The translations under genes were made by a program, and so were the position numbers. Shown in pieces: positions 54,133-64,000 of a stretch of 64,000 nt of DNA. The notes under the pieces are model-generated. The model was not told the origin of the DNA. It did no database searches and saw only the letters and a list, made by a program, of their open reading frames with translations. Source of the stretch: Leidyana gryllorum EB-2025a (taxonomy: Eukaryota; Protista; Apicomplexa). Each line of letters begins with the position of its first letter. The stretch's first letter is position 1. Where the stretch lies: positions 310,001-374,000 of the forward strand of contig JBLWGC010000104.1 in NCBI GenBank assembly GCA_048772705.1, given 5' to 3'.

Positions 54133-57100
54133 TCATCTGTTGTCTTCACGTTTTTTGTTGCACAGTTTCACCAACTCGTCTAAAAGTACAATGAAAATCG
54201 CTCCGCATATCGGAAGAGCAAGTTGCCTGCGTAGACGATAAGACACGCTCCCAATCGTACTCTGCTTGCTCACCATAGCCCGATTGGATGCAGATTGAAA
54301 GCCTCTCGACATCCTGGAATCAGAGTCATCATCAGTGTAATGGTAGCGGGAACAGATGCTCCCAGATGCAACCAACCTGACCGGTTGAACACCTTATGTG
54401 CTGGCTGTGGAGACCTCAACTGCCAAAGTACACAAATGTCACACGCCCTTTAAGTCCGCCCTCACTGAATAAGGCCACAGAATCTCACTGAAACCTGCCA
54501 ATACGAATGTTTGAGACGAAGCCACCCGACTGGCTCGCGTTGGCACCCATCGGTGTCCTTCTCCTTGTGTGGTCTTAGATGGTGCCAAACACCAACCGAG
54601 CGAGTCTCGACCCGAAGGACAGATCAATCTCTGCGTCAATCAATGAAGCGTATACTCATCACGGTGTGTCTTACTCGCGAGTCTATGCCGTATGTCTCTG
54701 GAGGCTGATGCCCTCCTGCGACACCCCGAGAAACACCCATGTATTGCCGCAAGATGCCATTGTGATAGAAATCGAGGTTTGTGTGCCAGTCGGCATAGCT
54801 CCCTGGGGTCCAACGAAACGCTTGGACGACACAAAGGTACCGATCTCCACTGTTAGTGGACAGACAGGCGTCTTGGAGCCCTTGATTGGTCCATACCCCT
54901 GCGTTCAAGTAGGTGGCCAAGACAGTACCGACCAGTATTATCAACCCAGAGAAGATCACATGTGGCAATATCACCCGTAGCCACACACCACGAGTCAATA
55001 TCGGCGTATTGCGTGGTCTAGGTTTTTGTTGCATAGCGTCAGGTTCGCGAGGCTCTCTAGCCAGCGATATTGCTGGTGGTGCGTCGCAGATCAAGTTGAT
55101 AAATAATACTTGCAGCGCAGACAAAGGCAATTTAAGGCCACATAGTATCGCTGTTGTCAGATACAGAATCTCTCCGAAATCTGTGCCAATTAAGTAGGCA
55201 ACAAAGTTGCGAACGTTAGCGAATATCCGTCTCCCTGCACACACTGTGTGTGTGTTCGTTCCCTGAGATCGGTGCTCACCTTCGGCAATAGCTTTGACAA
55301 TGGTGCCAAAGTCATCATCCATCAGAATCAGATCGGCTGCCGACTTTGCCACCTCGGTGCCACCCAGCCCCATGGCCACACCAATATCCGCCGTTTGCAA
55401 AGCCGGAGCATCGTTCACGCCATCGCCGGTCATTGCTACAACATGGCCTTGACGCTGCAAACTCTCCACGATCGTTAATTTGTCATCCGGTCTAGCTCTA
55501 GCAAATACAGTCGTGGCGCTGACCAAGTCATCACGGTGTTTCAGAGCCATCTCGTCTGATTGGTCGAACGCTTTCAAGGCGTCACATGTGACTGCCCCAT
55601 CATGATCTCCATTTCTGACAAAGAGTTTTCACCCATCACCTGACTAAGTGGAATGCTCTTACCCATTAATTCCAAGTCGTTTAGCAAGGGAGAGTGTGTT
55701 GGGCACTTGGTCACCCGTGATAATAACGACCTTGACATTCGCTTGCATGGCTTCTTTGATGGCACCAGCTACACTAGCCCGAGGAGGATCTTCAAACGCA
55801 AGAAAGCCCATCAAGCACCCTTTCCAGTTCTGGATCAATTCGAATCTCTCTTGTGCTGATGAGCAATCTTGCAGGACGATCATCTTCGCCTGCGAGAGAG
55901 GAATCAGGGCGACAGCCAATACTCTGAGCCCTCCAGCGGCAATAGACTCATTTCTTTCCAATATTTGATTTCGTTCATCCTCGGTGACGGGATTTCGGGT
56001 GTCGACAAACAGCTGTTTCAACTCATCGTACATAACGGGAGCGGAGCTGCACATAGAGAGGACAATCTCGGGTGCTCCCTTGATGGCTGCCATGCCAGCA
56101 GCAGGGACTCCTTGATCTATGAGTTTCATTTTAAAGACTTCCCCTCGATCAAATAGTCGATAAGTACAGATCTCCAGTTTGCGTGTCGATGTGAAAGGAA
56201 CGCTCAATTGCTCGTCCAATATATGTACGTTTCGAGGATTCCAGTGACCCTCTGCTTCCGACCACCAAGCCAACGATGCGGCGTCCAGAACGGCAGCTGC
56301 GAGCGATGGCGTGGAGGGGGAGCGAGTAGAGTCGGACTTACCATCTGTTCGGTTGCTTCTGGCACCTTCACTTGTGTTTGATGAGGATGTGGCCAGTCTG
56401 GCCACTAGAAGGAGAGACCTGCACAACAATCCGGAACCGGTGTATTCACCAGGATACCCAAGTCCCATGAGTCTTGGAGCATTATCGGGGATCGAGATGG
56501 GGGAGGGGGAGGTGGTCGTGTATGGAAGTATTATGCGTTCTCCTGGCTGCTGATTTATGATAATTGCATCTTGGAGCTCCAAAGGGGCCCCAGCGGAAGC
56601 TTTTCGGCTAGCGAAGGTCAATCGCGATGCTGATATCTTTCCTTCCGTAAGGGTTCCGGTCTTGTCAGTACAAATTATTGAAGTACAGCCCAGGGTTTCG
56701 ACGGCAGGAAGTCGTCTAATCTGAGCGGAGAGATTGAGACAAAGATGGGGAAGAACTCCTCTTACTCGAGCGTTAAAGCTATTCAGAATTCTGCATCCCA
56801 TAGCAAAGGACATGGTGACCACTGTTGGTAGCGATTCCGGCATAGCCGATACCGCGAATCCGACTGCCAGAACAACTATCTGCGATTAACACCTCCACAC
56901 ATGGGAGTAGTTAGACGTCACAGCTTCTCTCCTTAAATCACTGTGGCTTACCGTCACAACACGCGACCGATCTGGCGTGGATGGATCTGAATATCCCGTG
57001 ATCCAAGCCACCACCAGAATGAGGATCACGAAAAGCACCACGAAGCATCCAATGAGTCCGCCTAATCGCTTCAGAGCACCTTCCAATGGAGTCCTCTTGG

Positions 57101-58088
57101 GACCCTTCATGGCTCGCTCAACGAGTTTCTCAGCAATCATTCCCATTTGGGTATCCATTCCAACAGCGATGACGATGCCCTTGCCGTGTCCGCTAACAAC
57201 AACGGTGGAGTGATAACATACAGAGGCCGGTAGAGGCACTCGAGGTACTTGATGGGTTGCTACTTTGTCAATGGGGACAGATTCTCCTGTCAGAAGGCTT
57301 TCGTTGACCGTCAGATCAACAGCTTCGATCAGCCTGATGTCGGCTGGAACTGCTGCTCCGGTCCGAACTATCACAACGTCCCCGACCACAAGTTGATCTG
57401 AGGGGACTTCTCGCTCTTTTCCATCTCTAATTACAGTACATTGGGGCGAGATCAAGCTGGCAAGCGCGCGTAGAGCGTCTAGAGCTTGCCGTTGCATAAG
57501 AGTACTACTAATTGCATTGAATATGATAAGCAGCGCCAACACTGCGGCTTCAATCCACTCGGCAAACGCAAGACTGACAATGAATCCAACAATCAGCAAA
57601 GCGACCAAGGGTGATCGGAGTTCAGCAAATAACAACTGCCAGGAAGAAGGACGCGGAGCTTCTCGCACTATATTCTCTCCATATTGCGCCCGACTCCATT
57701 CGGCTTCGGCGTCCGTCAACCCGATGTGTCGATTAGTGCGCAGTTCGGACTCCAGCTCTGCAGTGGGCATATATGCGTACAACACATTCCCCGCAGCGCC
57801 CTGATCCGCTATTTCATGGACAGTACTGCGAAACGTGTCTGGAGCCATTCGACGACTCTGTGTCAGAATGTCTTCAAGGCTGAACTGTATATCCGGCACT
57901 CCATCGACGGCATTACCGCCACCCGTAAGAGCCCGCCGTGAACAGCGAGTTGTCGTGAAAGCGCGCTTCGTTGAATGATACCGGGTTGTCGGATCATTGC
58001 TGCGCCCAGTAGAAGGGCCAGCGAGTAGTTCTTCAACATGAGCTAAGGGGGGGACAGTAGGTGGCCTGTTCAGGTGTTCAACTCTCAT
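54133..58088 (-). CDS. ATP4: P-type II cation ATPase, ATP4-like (putative Na+ pump)
   Basis: TGES, LAVGFAVSAMPESLP, CTDKTGTLTEGK, KGAPE, DPPR, ITGD, MTGDGVNDAPAL, GTEVAK. ATP4-like GYSDPS luminal loop and VFNR..WLHL C-terminus; about 7 introns. Confidence 0.88.
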
Positions 58089-58118
58089 TGGAATACAGGC
58101 AGGCACACAGCCCAAAAA

Positions 58119-61100
58119 CTAAGCCTTATCCAACTCTGGTGCTACTGGGGGCATCGACTGACTCTTCTCCTGGTGGTGATGCATCTGAGCAGCCGCCTGG
58201 TTCAAAGGCTGCATAGTTTCCTTATCTATACGTCCCAAAGCAGTCTCGAAATGCTGCAAAGGTATCGCCCGGGCATTGGCGTCCTCAGCCATGAAAGTGA
58301 TCAAATGACGCTTTTGGGTCTCAGTCCACTCCATTCCCAGATGCTTTAAGATGTCGCCCAAAACAACGTTGTCCACCTCGCCAAGAGCCGTCAGGTGAAT
58401 CGCGAACTCCTCCTGTATCAGGTGGTCGATAGCGTCCAAATCCAGCTCATCGGCACTCAACAATTCCTCAACAACGAGCATTGCGACCAAGAATTCCTCC
58501 TCGTCCAAACCCCCAGTATGCGTCTTATCGAACTTCTCGAAGAAGCTCTCCAAATGGTCTACAGTCTCAATGTTCAATCCTTGGTCATTCAGCAGTCTGA
58601 AGAATGCCTCTGGCCCCACTTCCCCATCGTCCTCCATATTCTGGAACAGCTCAATGCGAGCCTCTCGAGTATCTGGATCCAGTTCCTCAAGTCTGATGAA
58701 GTCCCAATATTATCGATCCACCTCTGTTGCACTTACTTTGAACGTAGCTCGTCATACATGAACTCTCCATCTTCTGTACTCAGACGAGACATTAGTGATC
58801 GTATCTTAAGGCCATCGATGAAGAATGCCAGTCTCCGAACGAACTGAGAGCGGCTGTCAACCATTACCTCCAATGCCAATTCGTCCTTAACCATCATTCC
58901 AGTCGAACCAATGTAAGTGATGTGTGAAAGGAGGAAAGGGAGGAAGGCCATGCTGGCAAGCCACAGAACGAATGCTGCTAGCACTGGCCACCGTCTACAA
59001 ATGATAGTAACTCGACGATAAGGGCACCAGATTGTTTCGCTGTACTCACCCAACGCGTCCCCACCAATAGTTGGGGTTGTCGTCCATCTGTTTCAGTGCA
59101 TAAGCTCCGGCCGTAAGACTGATCAAGTGGGCTGCCTCGGTGAATCGGATCAAGGTCGACGGCCCCTTCCGCCAAAATAAGAAGAGACACTCCTGACGGT
59201 TGGGATGGCGAGTACCATAGAGCCGACGGTTCAAGAAGCCTCCCGGAGACGTTGGTCTGCCAGTCTACAAATCGGGGTACATTAGTCTACGCACACACGT
59301 GTGTACTCACTTCCATTGTCATATACTTCGGCCTGTTGAGGGCCAAGTCTGCTTCATAGTGTTCTTTCATGACGCCGGTGGTGTCTGAAGCTTGCTGGAA
59401 ACGAAGCGTGCAGTACTCGGCCGGATCGGGGGGCAAGAGGTTGGCCTTAACCATCCACGTACGTGCCAAGACGAAGAAGAGGAGCAAGATCGGGATTGCC
59501 AAGGCGATGAGTACGATGTAGACACTCCAGGGGACGTAGGTGTCATGCAAAGGCCTGAGGGCGAAGTCACGGATCTAAAACAAGCAGTGCGGGAGTAACT
59601 CACAGCAGCGACCAAATGACGATTTGGAGAAGAATCAGATTCATAATCGGGAATCGAATCATTCTAGCACAGTTTAGGAGGAAACTTGCTCGATAGTACT
59701 CCATGAACCAGGAGTTTTGAGGGTCCAGGTTGGCTACGTGTCTTTGGCTCATCCGTTCGATGTATTCATAGCGGGCGACAATATAATCGACAAACTCGGA
59801 TTTGGAGTAGCCTCCGATGACTTCATCCAGGGTGAGATCCTCAGCCCGTTTGAGCCATTTGATATTGAGGTACGCGCAGGCGGCGAAGAGGAGTATGTAA
59901 GTAACGTACAACAATGTGAAGTTCTCGGTGAGGGTTTGGACACTGCTGAATACGACCCCGAATCGTCTCGCAACGTCTTCCTCGAAGTGAATCTGACTAT
60001 AGAGAGGGAAGAAGACGAGGAAATCCAGTTTCTTCTGAATGAGATCCGTAGTTTGGAGCCAATGCAATATACACATGGCAACAGCAATGATGGCTATCTG
60101 ACGCATGGCCGTCTCAACGACTTCTCGCATGTATCGATCACGACTGCGTGTGATGACATTGACCAAAGATCTAACCATTCGCTGCAGCGTGATGATGATG
60201 ATAAGCAGAGCGGTCAAGAAACACGTGAGGACGATGGCCGAACGAGTGAGCAGCTTTCGAAGAAGTCCAATCGCTTCATCATCAACACCACACTTCTCAG
60301 GAGAAAGCTGAGCCGGATCACAGTTGGGCTTCGAAAGCTGACCCAGAGTCCTTCGACCTTCTTCGTCAACGCAAATGTCTACGTTGGGTCCGGTAGCGGC
60401 AGCGTTCATCGGCGCAGCAGCGGGTGCAGCGAAAGCTGTAACAGGCGTGGTGAGATCGAAATCGATCGTGTCCCCTTTTTTGATGCCATTCGCTGCCAAT
60501 GCCATCTCAGGATTCAGCATTTGATCGCCTTTCAAAGCCTTGAGGTCAGCGGTCTGATTGAAGGCTGCAGCGGCTTCGGCTATCAATGCTGTCAAAGGCT
60601 GATCGTCTGGAATGGCACTCGATTCCTTGATTCGACCGTCTGCACAAAGTCATGCATGACACAGATTTGTTGGATTTTCTGCTTACCAGGCTTCCATCGC
60701 ATCGTGACAGGTGTTGTTGTTGGAGCCCCCAAGGAGGCGTCTCGGCACCACAAGTTTGCGCCCATGGGAACGTTCTCCTGGGTGAGGGTGTTCTTCTTCG
60801 GCAACTGTTTGTCATTGTAAAATAGCTCGAATTGTTCCTGGTAACCGATACCCGCCTGATCGAAAGCTTTCTTTATGTGAGTTTGGATTATTGGCTCGGT
60901 TTCGCCCGTGGGGGTCATCGGCACTATGTAAGTGGGCGAGCGCCCTGGAGGTACTGGGCCATCAATCTTTATGACTGCGCGTGCAGGAGGCGCCCGTAGG
61001 AATCGGGATTCAAAACCAGTGCTTTCGGGGCTCGGATCCGGTGCATTGTTCGTAACAAATTTAGACAAATCAACAGCGTTGGAGGCTACCGCCACTTTTC

Positions 61101-61247
61101 CAGCGTTGTTAGACAGAGGATGCGGATAGGAGACAGCAGGCCCTCTCAACCCAATGGTGGGTGTCTGATAGCAAGATCAGTTGATCATCCATCTAGTCTC
61201 ACCAAGAAGGGCCCGGCCAATCCAAGGCATACTAGGAAACGGAGCAT
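58119..61247 (-). CDS. Signal peptide + 2 ubiquitin-like domains + MLO-like membrane domain + EF-hand tail (~949 aa, 7 exons)
   Basis: Exons 61247-61203, 61164-60687, 60639-59604, 59554-59311, 59264-59050, 58994-58737 and 58692-58119 total 2850 nt, all GT-AG and in frame. MLO-like motifs and EF loop DKTHTGGLDEEE. Confidence 0.8.
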
Positions 61248-61299: not shown

Positions 61300-62085
61300 C
61301 TATATACAAGCTTCATATTTACGCGCAGATATGAGAGTTGCTCCCTTCCAAACTCCCTTACAAGCCGTACAGCGACCTGTCTTTTCGCAGACACTACTGT
61401 ACACGTGATATTCCATGTCGTTCGCTATGGGGTTCGTGGCTTTGCCACGTCTCTCCCTGAGCTTTCGTTCGTACCACAGACGCACGCCTTCCGTGATGCG
61501 CGGGCAGAAGCTTGTGACAGCTCCGGTCAGAGTAATATCGCGCGTGTGTGCCACTCTCCAACTTGGAGACGTCTCCTCCAATTCTGGCACCTCCACGTCG
61601 TCGGTAACTGCATGATCGATTTTCTGCAGCAGTTCTGTTCGTGCTGAGTCTTCTTCCGTGACGGACTGTTCGAGTGCTTGTTGATCGGGCGTCGGAAGTA
61701 CTTGGCCCCCATCTTGTGGATCAGTGGTGGGGCTTACCCTGGCCTCTGCTGCCGTGGGGGACTCCTTAATCTTGGGGAGCCCCTCAGGGTCAATTTCAGA
61801 CTTGATAGCGGTGTCCACCTCTGTCTTGAGGGTCAATTGGTCAATGCCGAGTGCGGGCGCCGTTGTCAAGTGTGCAGCAACGTTCTCTTTGTTGTTAGCC
61901 GGCATGGACTTGCGCAGTCGTTTGGTGCCTTCACGAATGCGTATGATATCGCCTTGATTGATGTTGTCTTGTGCACTCAGTTCTGTCAAGCATCCCCAGG
62001 GATCGTCTTCAGCGCTGCGATGTCCGCTTTCTTCAGGCTTGCGCTTCTGAAAAAAGCGTGTAATGGGCACATCTCCCTTGCCCAT
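61300..62085 (-). CDS. Hypothetical protein with N-terminal PIP-box-like motif
   Basis: 261-aa ORF starting MGKGDVPITRFFQKRK. Confidence 0.6.
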   Translation of the reverse strand: MGKGDVPITRFFQKRKPEESGHRSAEDDPWGCLTELSAQDNINQGDIIRIREGTKRLRKSMPANNKENVAAHLTTAPALGIDQLTLKTEVDTAIKSEIDPEGLPKIKESPTAAEARVSPTTDPQDGGQVLPTPDQQALEQSVTEEDSARTELLQKIDHAVTDDVEVPELEETSPSWRVAHTRDITLTGAVTSFCPRITEGVRLWYERKLRERRGKATNPIANDMEYHVYSSVCEKTGRCTACKGVWKGATLISARKYEACI

Positions 62086-62130: not shown

Positions 62131-63383
62131 TTACTCTGAGTCTGAACCATTCATTTCACTTTCACCATCACTGTCACCATCTTGCCCTTTGCCCTCCTCA
62201 TCACTCTCCTCAAATCTATCATCTGACCCCTCTTCCTCCTCTTCTTCGTCTACGGAAGATTCACTTACTGAGGAGTCATCATCGTCTTGAGCATCTCGTC
62301 TCCTCTTTTTGACCTTGGTTTCTTCTTCGCCTTCGTCTTCCGCGGAGCTCTCCTCACTGCTGCTCTCTTCATTGTCTCTTTGCTGTTGTAGAGCCAACTG
62401 CATTCTTTGAGCAGCTCGGCGTTGACGCCGAACTCCGGTATCAAAGTCTGCCCGCTCCCATTCTTTCAATCCAATCTCTCTCATTTCTTGTTCTAACTCC
62501 CACTGTTGAATGGCTTGGTCGATCGTTTGTCTACTGGGCAGTTTATCGCCTCCACTCCAAGAGATCTGCAGTCAGCACATATGTAAGCGACCGCAAAGGG
62601 AGAGCGATAACTCACGTTGACATCCTTACAGCGTCGCATCAAGCGAAGCTTTAGCTCTTTGATGTAGGCCTGTGGATCTTCCTTGTTGAGACCCTTATAG
62701 ATAGCCGGACCACATTTCAGCGCTTTGGCGAATGCCAGCCATTTAGACTTCGGGTCATCAGTGCCCTTTGTGGCAGTTTTGGATCGGGCGACTGGTTTCT
62801 TCTTGGGTTTCTCGCTCTCACGTTCGCGACTCGTCTTTGACTCCTTCTCTGCGCGATCGGTCTTTTTGGTCCGAGTTGCAGCTGGGCTCTTGGCACTGGA
62901 GTCTTGTTCAGACGCTTTCGAGACTCGCTGCTTCTTCTTACGTCCCGACGACGGCTCCGGTGACTCCTGTCTCCCCCTTTTCCGACCTCTGCGAGGTTTT
63001 GATGCCGCCACTGCGCTGTCGGTGAGGTCAGAATCCGGTACCGCCGAGTTGGCAGTGAGGGTGGGCACAAAGGAGTGTGTACCTTCCCTCCCAGATTGGG
63101 AGTCCGGAGTGCCATCCTGTTGGGTCTGAGCGACTCGTTCTTCTTTCATTAGCTCATAGAGGCTAGCGGCGACGATTTTGGCAGCCTTCTTGACCATATC
63201 CTTGACATCCTTGTCATCGGTGATGAGACTAACTTTTATCTCGAGGTGGTCAGCGAGGAAGCCGAATATCCTGGTGGGGGTCAGCTCGGCAAGAGGAACT
63301 CCACTTCGTAAAATGAGGTCAGAGAGGAGGTTTTGAAGGCTTTCATCGTCAAGAAGTAGCGTCTGTAGTCGGGCTGGTATCAT
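62131..63383 (-). CDS. HIRIP3/DEK-C-like histone chaperone
   Basis: N-terminal helical DEK-C-like part (LAELTPTRIFGFLADHLEI), basic linker, ALKCGPAIYKGL..IKELK..|..LPSRQTIDQAIQQWELEQEM, very acidic tail; one intron at ~62566-62615. Confidence 0.65.
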
Positions 63384-63406: not shown

Positions 63407-64000
63407 ATGACCAATCCCGAAGTTGACTTGGAAGACCGCCAGCACCCCCAGCCGGCTTCGGAACCCCGAACCAAATGGAGAAGGGTCCAAGATGACCCCC
63501 ATACCGTCAAGCTTTACGATGTCAATCGCCCCTTGCTGCAAATTGCTCCAATGCTGCACGTCAGTGACCGGCACTTTCGGTAAGCCTTTGCCCGCTTTTC
63601 GCATGAACTATACGCGATATCCCAGCAATTTCATACGTATGCTGACTGCTAAAGCGCAATTATGGACGGAGATGGTGGTAGATTCTACTATAAAGCACAC
63701 CGATGATTTGCCCCGGCATCTTGGCTATGACCAGGTGGAGCATCCTATCGTGTGCCAGCTCGGAGGTTCTAACCCCGAGGAGATGGCCGCGGCGGCGAAG
63801 GTCGTGGAGGAGTGGGGTTATGACGAAGTTAATGTGAACGTCGGGTGCCCAAGCAGTCGAGTAGTTGACTGTGGATTGTTTGGAGCACTGTTGATGAAAG
63901 ACCCGGAACTCGTATCTCGGATCTGTACGAGTATGAAGGCCCAAACGAGTATACCTGTGACCATCAAGACTCGTATCGGGGTCGACTCTGAAGATTCTTT
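63407..64000 (+). CDS. DUS: tRNA-dihydrouridine synthase (DusA-like), truncated by window end
   Basis: IAPMLHVSDRHFR|NFIRML..LWTEMV, EHPIVCQLGGSNP, GYDEVNVNVGCPS, FGALLMKDP, PVTIKTRIGVD. Confidence 0.93.

Follow-up and report, generated by a model that had tools for sequence, protein, structure and literature searches.

A gregarine orthologue of RON11 with predicted luminal ubiquitin-like domains and a probable relationship to the MLO family

What kind of protein would join a signal peptide, ubiquitin-like (Ubl) domains, seven transmembrane (7TM) helices and EF-hands in one chain? The question is raised by a gene at 58119..61247, on the minus strand of the window (64,000 nucleotides of the gregarine Leidyana gryllorum EB-2025a, positions 310,001 to 374,000 of contig JBLWGC010000104.1), which an earlier note, made from the letters alone, had read as a channel of the MLO type with a calmodulin-like tail and with an architecture known from no described protein. 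Homology shows that this gene of seven predicted exons and 949 aa is the single-copy orthologue of rhoptry neck protein 11 (RON11) in this gregarine. The combination of a signal peptide, 7TM and EF-hands is therefore the known layout of RON11, and fusions of MLO with EF-hands are also on record, so that of the novelty claimed earlier the Ubl units remain. In the literature searched, most of it open-access, we found no description of tandem ubiquitin-fold domains in the lumenal region of gregarine RON11, nor of a link between RON11 and MLO, which we consider probable.

A search of exon 3 against 1.84 billion representative proteins returned 13 proteins, 11 of which form one family; of the two outside this family, P0005 is a repeat protein rich in Ala and Thr, and for P0011 the match covers 43 residues only. 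The named relatives come from Gregarina sp. Poly1 (E 4e-57), G. niphandrodes, Hammondia (HHA_230350), Eimeria, Cyclospora, Cardiosporidium, Theileria and Porospora, and a Plasmodium cluster annotated as rhoptry neck protein 11 is among them; the Toxoplasma RON11 is TGME49_230350 (PMC3567180). The 949-aa model aligns with the Hammondia protein at E 2e-67 and with P. vivax RON11 at E 7e-60, over approximately 680-700 residues (aa 275-945) and with 24-28% identity to RON11 proteins. With RON11 of Toxoplasma, P. falciparum (PF3D7_1463900) and Cryptosporidium (cgd3_2010) it shares the signal peptide, the long luminal N-terminal region, a cysteine pair before the first helix, the 7TM core, the EF-hand tail and the occurrence as a single copy, since only one RON11 locus is present in this genome. 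In the tree, which is unrooted, lacks an outgroup and has long branches, the protein groups with the gregarine sequences on a branch with 100/100 support. A contig from a third gregarine (Logan ERR10900127, L002:1-560) encodes a close relative with 48% identity in the core. Word-index searches retrieved no match for exon 3, and only P0003 itself when its core or the family alignment served as the query, which reflects a limit of the tool, as a full HMMER scan recovered the family; a scan of metagenomes found no relative. Database searches and fold predictions were made with single exons or with database proteins, and the joined protein was used only for the frame, the alignment, the tree and the motif work.

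The splice structure is predicted from the genomic sequence. The exons lie on the minus strand at 61247-61203 (exon 1), 61164-60687 (exon 2), 60639-59604 (exon 3), 59554-59311 (exon 4), 59264-59050 (exon 5), 58994-58737 (exon 6) and 58692-58119 (exon 7), and the six GT-AG introns between them measure, in order, 38, 47, 49, 46, 55 and 44 nt. The resulting frame is the longest of the 8 open combinations found in an exhaustive test of acceptors; a 29-nt acceptor for intron 3 was rejected, as it runs into a stop. Residues ~262-945 are colinear with the proteins of G. niphandrodes, Hammondia, Plasmodium, Theileria and Porospora across junctions 3-6, at a level far beyond chance (E 2e-71 to 1e-42). 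The earlier gene model thus holds, with its frame open and its exons 3-7 aligning end to end with apicomplexan homologues, and every motif quoted for it was located in the protein. Exon 1 itself has no homology support; it was included because of its hydrophobic start and because the frame of exon 2 contains no Met before residue 99. It supplies aa 1-15 of a putative signal peptide that extends to ~aa 20 within exon 2 and is moderately hydrophobic (hydropathy peak 1.56); the relatives also begin with hydrophobic leaders.

Behind the leader lies the part that sets this protein apart from the RON11 of coccidians and haemosporidians, namely two ubiquitin-fold units at the place where the latter have a low-complexity region. 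For Ubl-1 (aa 76-158; 60736..60984, minus strand) the AlphaFold 2 (AF2) model shows a beta-grasp domain, with a predicted local distance difference test score (pLDDT) of 72.5; the model matches ubiquitin in Foldseek (E 6e-5), and in VIA-align the Ubl domain of SF3A1 (Z 9.8) and SUMO (Z 9.7), at a root-mean-square deviation of ~2-2.5 A. The alignment used for this folding contained other presumed Ubl units, which introduces some circularity, and the test is not fully independent. Matches of the single sequence are weaker and point in the same direction (Pfam TUG-UBL1, E 0.012; ubiquitin variants, E 0.09-1.6), and a hidden Markov model (HMM) built from the other gregarine units, with those of this protein left out, gives Ubl-1 5.0 bits, at the edge of chance, the best of 500 shuffles reaching 5.1. 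The same HMM did not detect Ubl-2 (aa ~166-238; 60449..60714, minus strand), which intron 2 splits after the first strand. Judged by sub-threshold Pfam matches to YukD (E 0.0017) and Rad60-SLD (E 0.23), Ubl-2 is probably a beta-grasp domain as well. The beta-grasp domains proposed for the luminal side are thereby upheld by fold for Ubl-1 and made probable by weak ubiquitin-clan matches for Ubl-2; the further label "SUMO-like" for the latter goes beyond what these matches show, namely a likeness to the ubiquitin clan as a whole. No diglycine occurs anywhere in aa 1-300, in agreement with the absence of a terminal GG noted before.

Other gregarines carry such units in varying number. The profile of the gregarine units matches the Ubl domains of ubiquilin, parkin, NEDD8 and Rad23. 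RON11 of Gregarina Poly1 has two to three of them, with leader, units and core in one EukProt chain, and that of Porospora has three to four, one of which exceeds the Pfam ubiquitin cut-off (28.6 bits). In Porospora, aa 119-1098, comprising Ubl units, core and tail, are encoded in a single exon, and the fusion of the units to the core is therefore independent of splice prediction. In the Logan contig two Ubl-like stretches are visible by eye directly upstream of the core, and in G. niphandrodes there is a single candidate, to which no Pfam profile matches. No units were detected in the N-termini of RON11 from Hammondia, Plasmodium, Theileria, Eimeria and Cyclospora with an HMM that was itself weak. 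That the number of units differs from one gregarine to another suggests a function specific to the lineage. Elsewhere in this genome the gregarine Ubl profile matches a single other place, the N-terminal, ordinary-looking ubiquitin-like domain of locus L005 (G000:C104:1190857-1191018; E 7e-5).

Given the signal peptide and the seven helices, we infer that the units face the lumen. Ubiquitin-fold domains in the secretory lumen are unusual. In their beta-grasp fold without a terminal diglycine, and in their tandem arrangement inside a larger chain, the units resemble the integral (type II) Ubl domains such as SF3A1 Ubl, TUG-UBL1, Rad60-SLD and YukD; these, however, are at work in the cytosol or nucleus, or come from bacteria, whereas the units described here are predicted to reside away from the ubiquitin machinery. 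Between Ubl-2 and the first helix runs a linker (60290..60373, minus strand; from the alignment and its consensus) with C264, C281 and C291. All three cysteines that had been pointed out are thus present, but only C281 and C291 are conserved, as the pair kept before the first helix in RON11. The basic motifs RFLR and RRTL, earlier suggested to flank the Ubl domains as cleavage sites, and the PEXEL-like RTLGQ (aa 271) were rejected as conserved sites: they are missing in four other gregarine proteins, with ~0.2 expected by chance (an estimate). Unlike other RON11 proteins, this one has no PEXEL-like site near its N-terminus.

The core (aa 275-725; 58838..60340, minus strand) contains seven helices, as proposed before, at approximately aa 308-328 (TM1), 352-371 (TM2), 414-435 (TM3), 501-522 (TM4), 529-551 (TM5), 637-657 (TM6) and 674-700 (TM7), as judged from hydropathy and from helices mapped across from the AF2 model of the G. 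niphandrodes orthologue (pLDDT 73 for core and tail); TM6 is weakly hydrophobic in this protein. The predicted topology is that of MLO proteins (PF03094), with the N-terminus outside, the C-terminus in the cytosol and long cytosolic loops, in particular loop 2 (loop 3 is long as well). The signal peptide and the luminal extension of 290 aa, in contrast, have no counterpart in MLO. The relationship is supported by ESM Atlas features, compared by one method that gives no E-value: for the membrane part in exon 3, 26 of the 30 matches are Mlo clusters (score 0.92, 201 shared features), and for the membrane core of P. vivax RON11, 29 of 30 (score 0.92, 203 shared features). The two queries are ~25% identical, and both lack the EF tail. 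Kusch et al. 2016 (PMC4824068) reported MLO-like proteins from Eimeria and Perkinsus, and MLO-EF-hand fusions from alveolates, stramenopiles, green algae and Apusozoa. The present protein has such a fusion in common with the MLO-like proteins of oomycetes, algae and alveolates, which that study describes without any mention of ubiquitin. Hence the relationship to MLO suspected in the earlier note finds support in features of the ESM kind, and we consider it quite likely that the RON11 core is a divergent MLO-superfamily fold, homologous to MLO, though it should not be filed as a Pfam MLO member. In loop 2 of RON11 from P. vivax (P0018) and Theileria (P0010), a motif CF..[IF]F stands 14-15 residues before a conserved arginine block; it resembles CFFRQF of plant MLO, and the stretch is deleted in gregarines.

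The cytosolic tail (aa 765-920; 58209..58676, minus strand) resembles calmodulin, with two EF-like lobes and one near-canonical EF loop (aa 814-825; 58529-58494, minus strand), much as it had been described at the outset. It matches Pfam EF-hand_1 (E 2e-4), the family profile matches calmodulin at E 2e-4, and the tail alone is 29% identical to that of P. vivax RON11 (E 2e-24). The loop is kept in coccidians and in Plasmodium.

Several observations weigh against the view that RON11 is an EF-hand-regulated channel of the MLO type. Both ESM searches rest on the same method, and a score of 0.9 is attained by 4-10% of shuffled proteins. The Pfam Mlo profile matches neither any exon nor any member of the RON11 family, and a search of the genome with it, run without a working positive control, was blank. 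The MLO-pattern motifs that had been read in their proper order are visible by eye, and they are not significant: when published plant motifs are chained in order, 16-266 of 400 shuffles (4-66%) attain the real score, and the best chain in this protein lies in another register than the one first proposed, so that plant motifs were rejected as proof of MLO membership. The extracellular loops 1 and 3, which carry four invariant cysteines in plants, contain no Cys here, and the invariant calmodulin-binding Trp that follows TM7 in plants is missing, the protein having an EF-hand tail in its stead; in published protist MLO-like proteins, too, the cysteines are mostly missing and the calmodulin-binding motif is absent. 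Searching the PDB with the core, by sequence and by fold, produced EF-hand matches and generic helical bundles only (Z <=6.8), with no MLO chain, and the best match in the atlas structure search was an 874-aa eukaryotic EF-hand cluster (TM-score 0.59 over 453 residues), with no Mlo among the listed families. In favour of the channel, residues Q327, E347 and E350 (60113..60184, minus strand) repeat the 0/+20/+23 spacing of E35/E55/E58 of barley Mlo, which form an acidic ring at the pore mouth as modelled in an AlphaFold 3 study. This correspondence is one of spacing only, drawn post hoc, and Theileria has lost the acidic positions, while Plasmodium and G. niphandrodes retain them in part. Finally, G. 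niphandrodes and Porospora have a degenerate EF loop, which again speaks against the channel.

What RON11 does has been studied in three genera, Toxoplasma, Plasmodium and Cryptosporidium, from which alone its location in rhoptries is known. The protein, described as 7TM with C-terminal EF-hands, is essential for invasion and for the formation of the rhoptry pair in P. falciparum, where its knockdown leaves one rhoptry instead of two, with less cargo; it sets rhoptry number (PMC11441699). It is dispensable in Toxoplasma culture (PMC4780768), and in Cryptosporidium it marks the rhoptry membrane that turns into the feeder organelle (10.64898/2026.07.21.739819). Its luminal region undergoes ASP3-dependent processing in Toxoplasma, and the unprocessed form is misdistributed (PMC5595437); P. 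falciparum RON11 has a signal peptide, and a reporter is cut at its PEXEL. As for plant MLOs, they conduct Ca2+, and their regulation by calmodulin at the C-terminus is thought likely, negative feedback being still a proposal.

On this background, we propose that RON11 would sit in the membrane of the rhoptry, or in a membrane derived from it (for gregarines by extrapolation from the three genera above), with its N-terminus toward the organelle lumen and its EF-hand tail toward the cytosol. The core would oligomerise to form a pore permeable to Ca2+ or divalent cations, and the fused calmodulin-like tail would stand in for the free calmodulin of plant MLOs, providing built-in Ca2+ feedback. 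In gregarines, the one to four non-conjugatable ubiquitin-fold units (two here) would most likely serve as luminal packing or sorting modules, and they might be trimmed during maturation of the organelle, like the N-terminus of RON11 in Toxoplasma and Plasmodium. This role of the units is the weakest step of the proposal; since the luminal region is processed in the former, and the reporter is cleaved in P. falciparum, a trimmed pro-region or a sorting role is plausible. We rate the chances about even that RON11 passes divalent cations through the rhoptry membrane as a channel of the MLO type regulated by its EF-hands, a function suggested by sequence comparison, and the complete scenario, from RON11 identity and MLO-type pore to EF feedback and luminal modules, seems to us equally balanced between right and wrong. 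More tentative still, and somewhat doubtful, is the specific proposal that RON11 is a Ca2+ channel of the MLO family that has gone unrecognised in the rhoptry membrane, that it carries a calmodulin-like gate of its own, and that in gregarines the luminal Ubl domains gate or sort it.

The main rival to the channel is a RON11 that descends from an MLO ancestor and no longer conducts, acting instead as a Ca2+-sensing membrane scaffold for rhoptry biogenesis and cargo sorting, whose Ubl units bind luminal cargo. The single, cargo-poor rhoptry of the P. falciparum knockdown fits this reading, as do the binding of plant MLOs to the exocyst subunit EXO70, the variation of the putative acidic pore residues across the RON11 family and a report of MLOs taking part in polarized secretion, with a possible recruitment of other channels by them (10.64898/2026.04.10.716904). 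A channel could yield the same phenotypes, however, and the complete 7TM core with its cytosolic loops is conserved across Apicomplexa; we regard the scaffold as rather unlikely. It is even less probable that RON11 represents a 7TM family of the Apicomplexa with no kinship to MLO, the ESM likeness arising from a generic 7TM and EF-hand layout. The lack of a Pfam Mlo match, the insignificant motif test and the absence of a structural match naming Mlo speak for this possibility, but two divergent queries restricted to the membrane part gave almost exclusively Mlo clusters, with over 200 shared features, and alveolate MLO-like proteins with EF-hands have been published.

The luminal Ubl architecture itself might be a modelling artefact, either because the Ubl exons belong outside the transcript, as the earlier note had envisaged, or because the N-terminus is cytosolic. 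Exon joins predicted from genomic sequence, a first exon without homology and a moderately hydrophobic leader leave some room for this idea. Most of Ubl-2, however, resides in the same exon as TM1-4, and the one-exon Porospora gene, the continuous Gregarina chain of EukProt and the third gregarine, with its Ubl-like stretches (by eye) next to the core, all argue for a genuine fusion, so that we consider an artefact very improbable.

If the core is indeed of the MLO type, the search for a Ca2+ channel of the rhoptry gains a concrete candidate in RON11, one in which particular residues can be tested with the assays developed for plant MLOs. Should the channel reading prove true, it would supply a molecular function for a protein essential to rhoptry biogenesis and invasion in P. 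falciparum. Gregarines have been reported to lack the RON proteins of the moving junction (PMC9250747); the presence of RON11 in them therefore suggests that a role in organelle homeostasis is older than junction formation.

The surroundings of the gene are tightly packed. A spliced gene for a P-type cation ATPase (54133-58115, likewise on the minus strand), with Pfam matches to E1-E2_ATPase, Cation_ATPase_N and Cation_ATPase_C, begins directly beyond the stop codon of RON11; a conserved linkage of the two genes was rejected, since no such neighbour was seen near the RON11 genes of G. niphandrodes and Porospora. Upstream, the nearest stop codon precedes the RON11 start by 53 nt, and two closely spaced genes without Pfam matches follow at 61300-62085 and 62131-63383, both on the minus strand. 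On the plus strand, at 63556-64000, lies a frame which, by eye, we take to resemble the N-terminus of a tRNA-dihydrouridine synthase.
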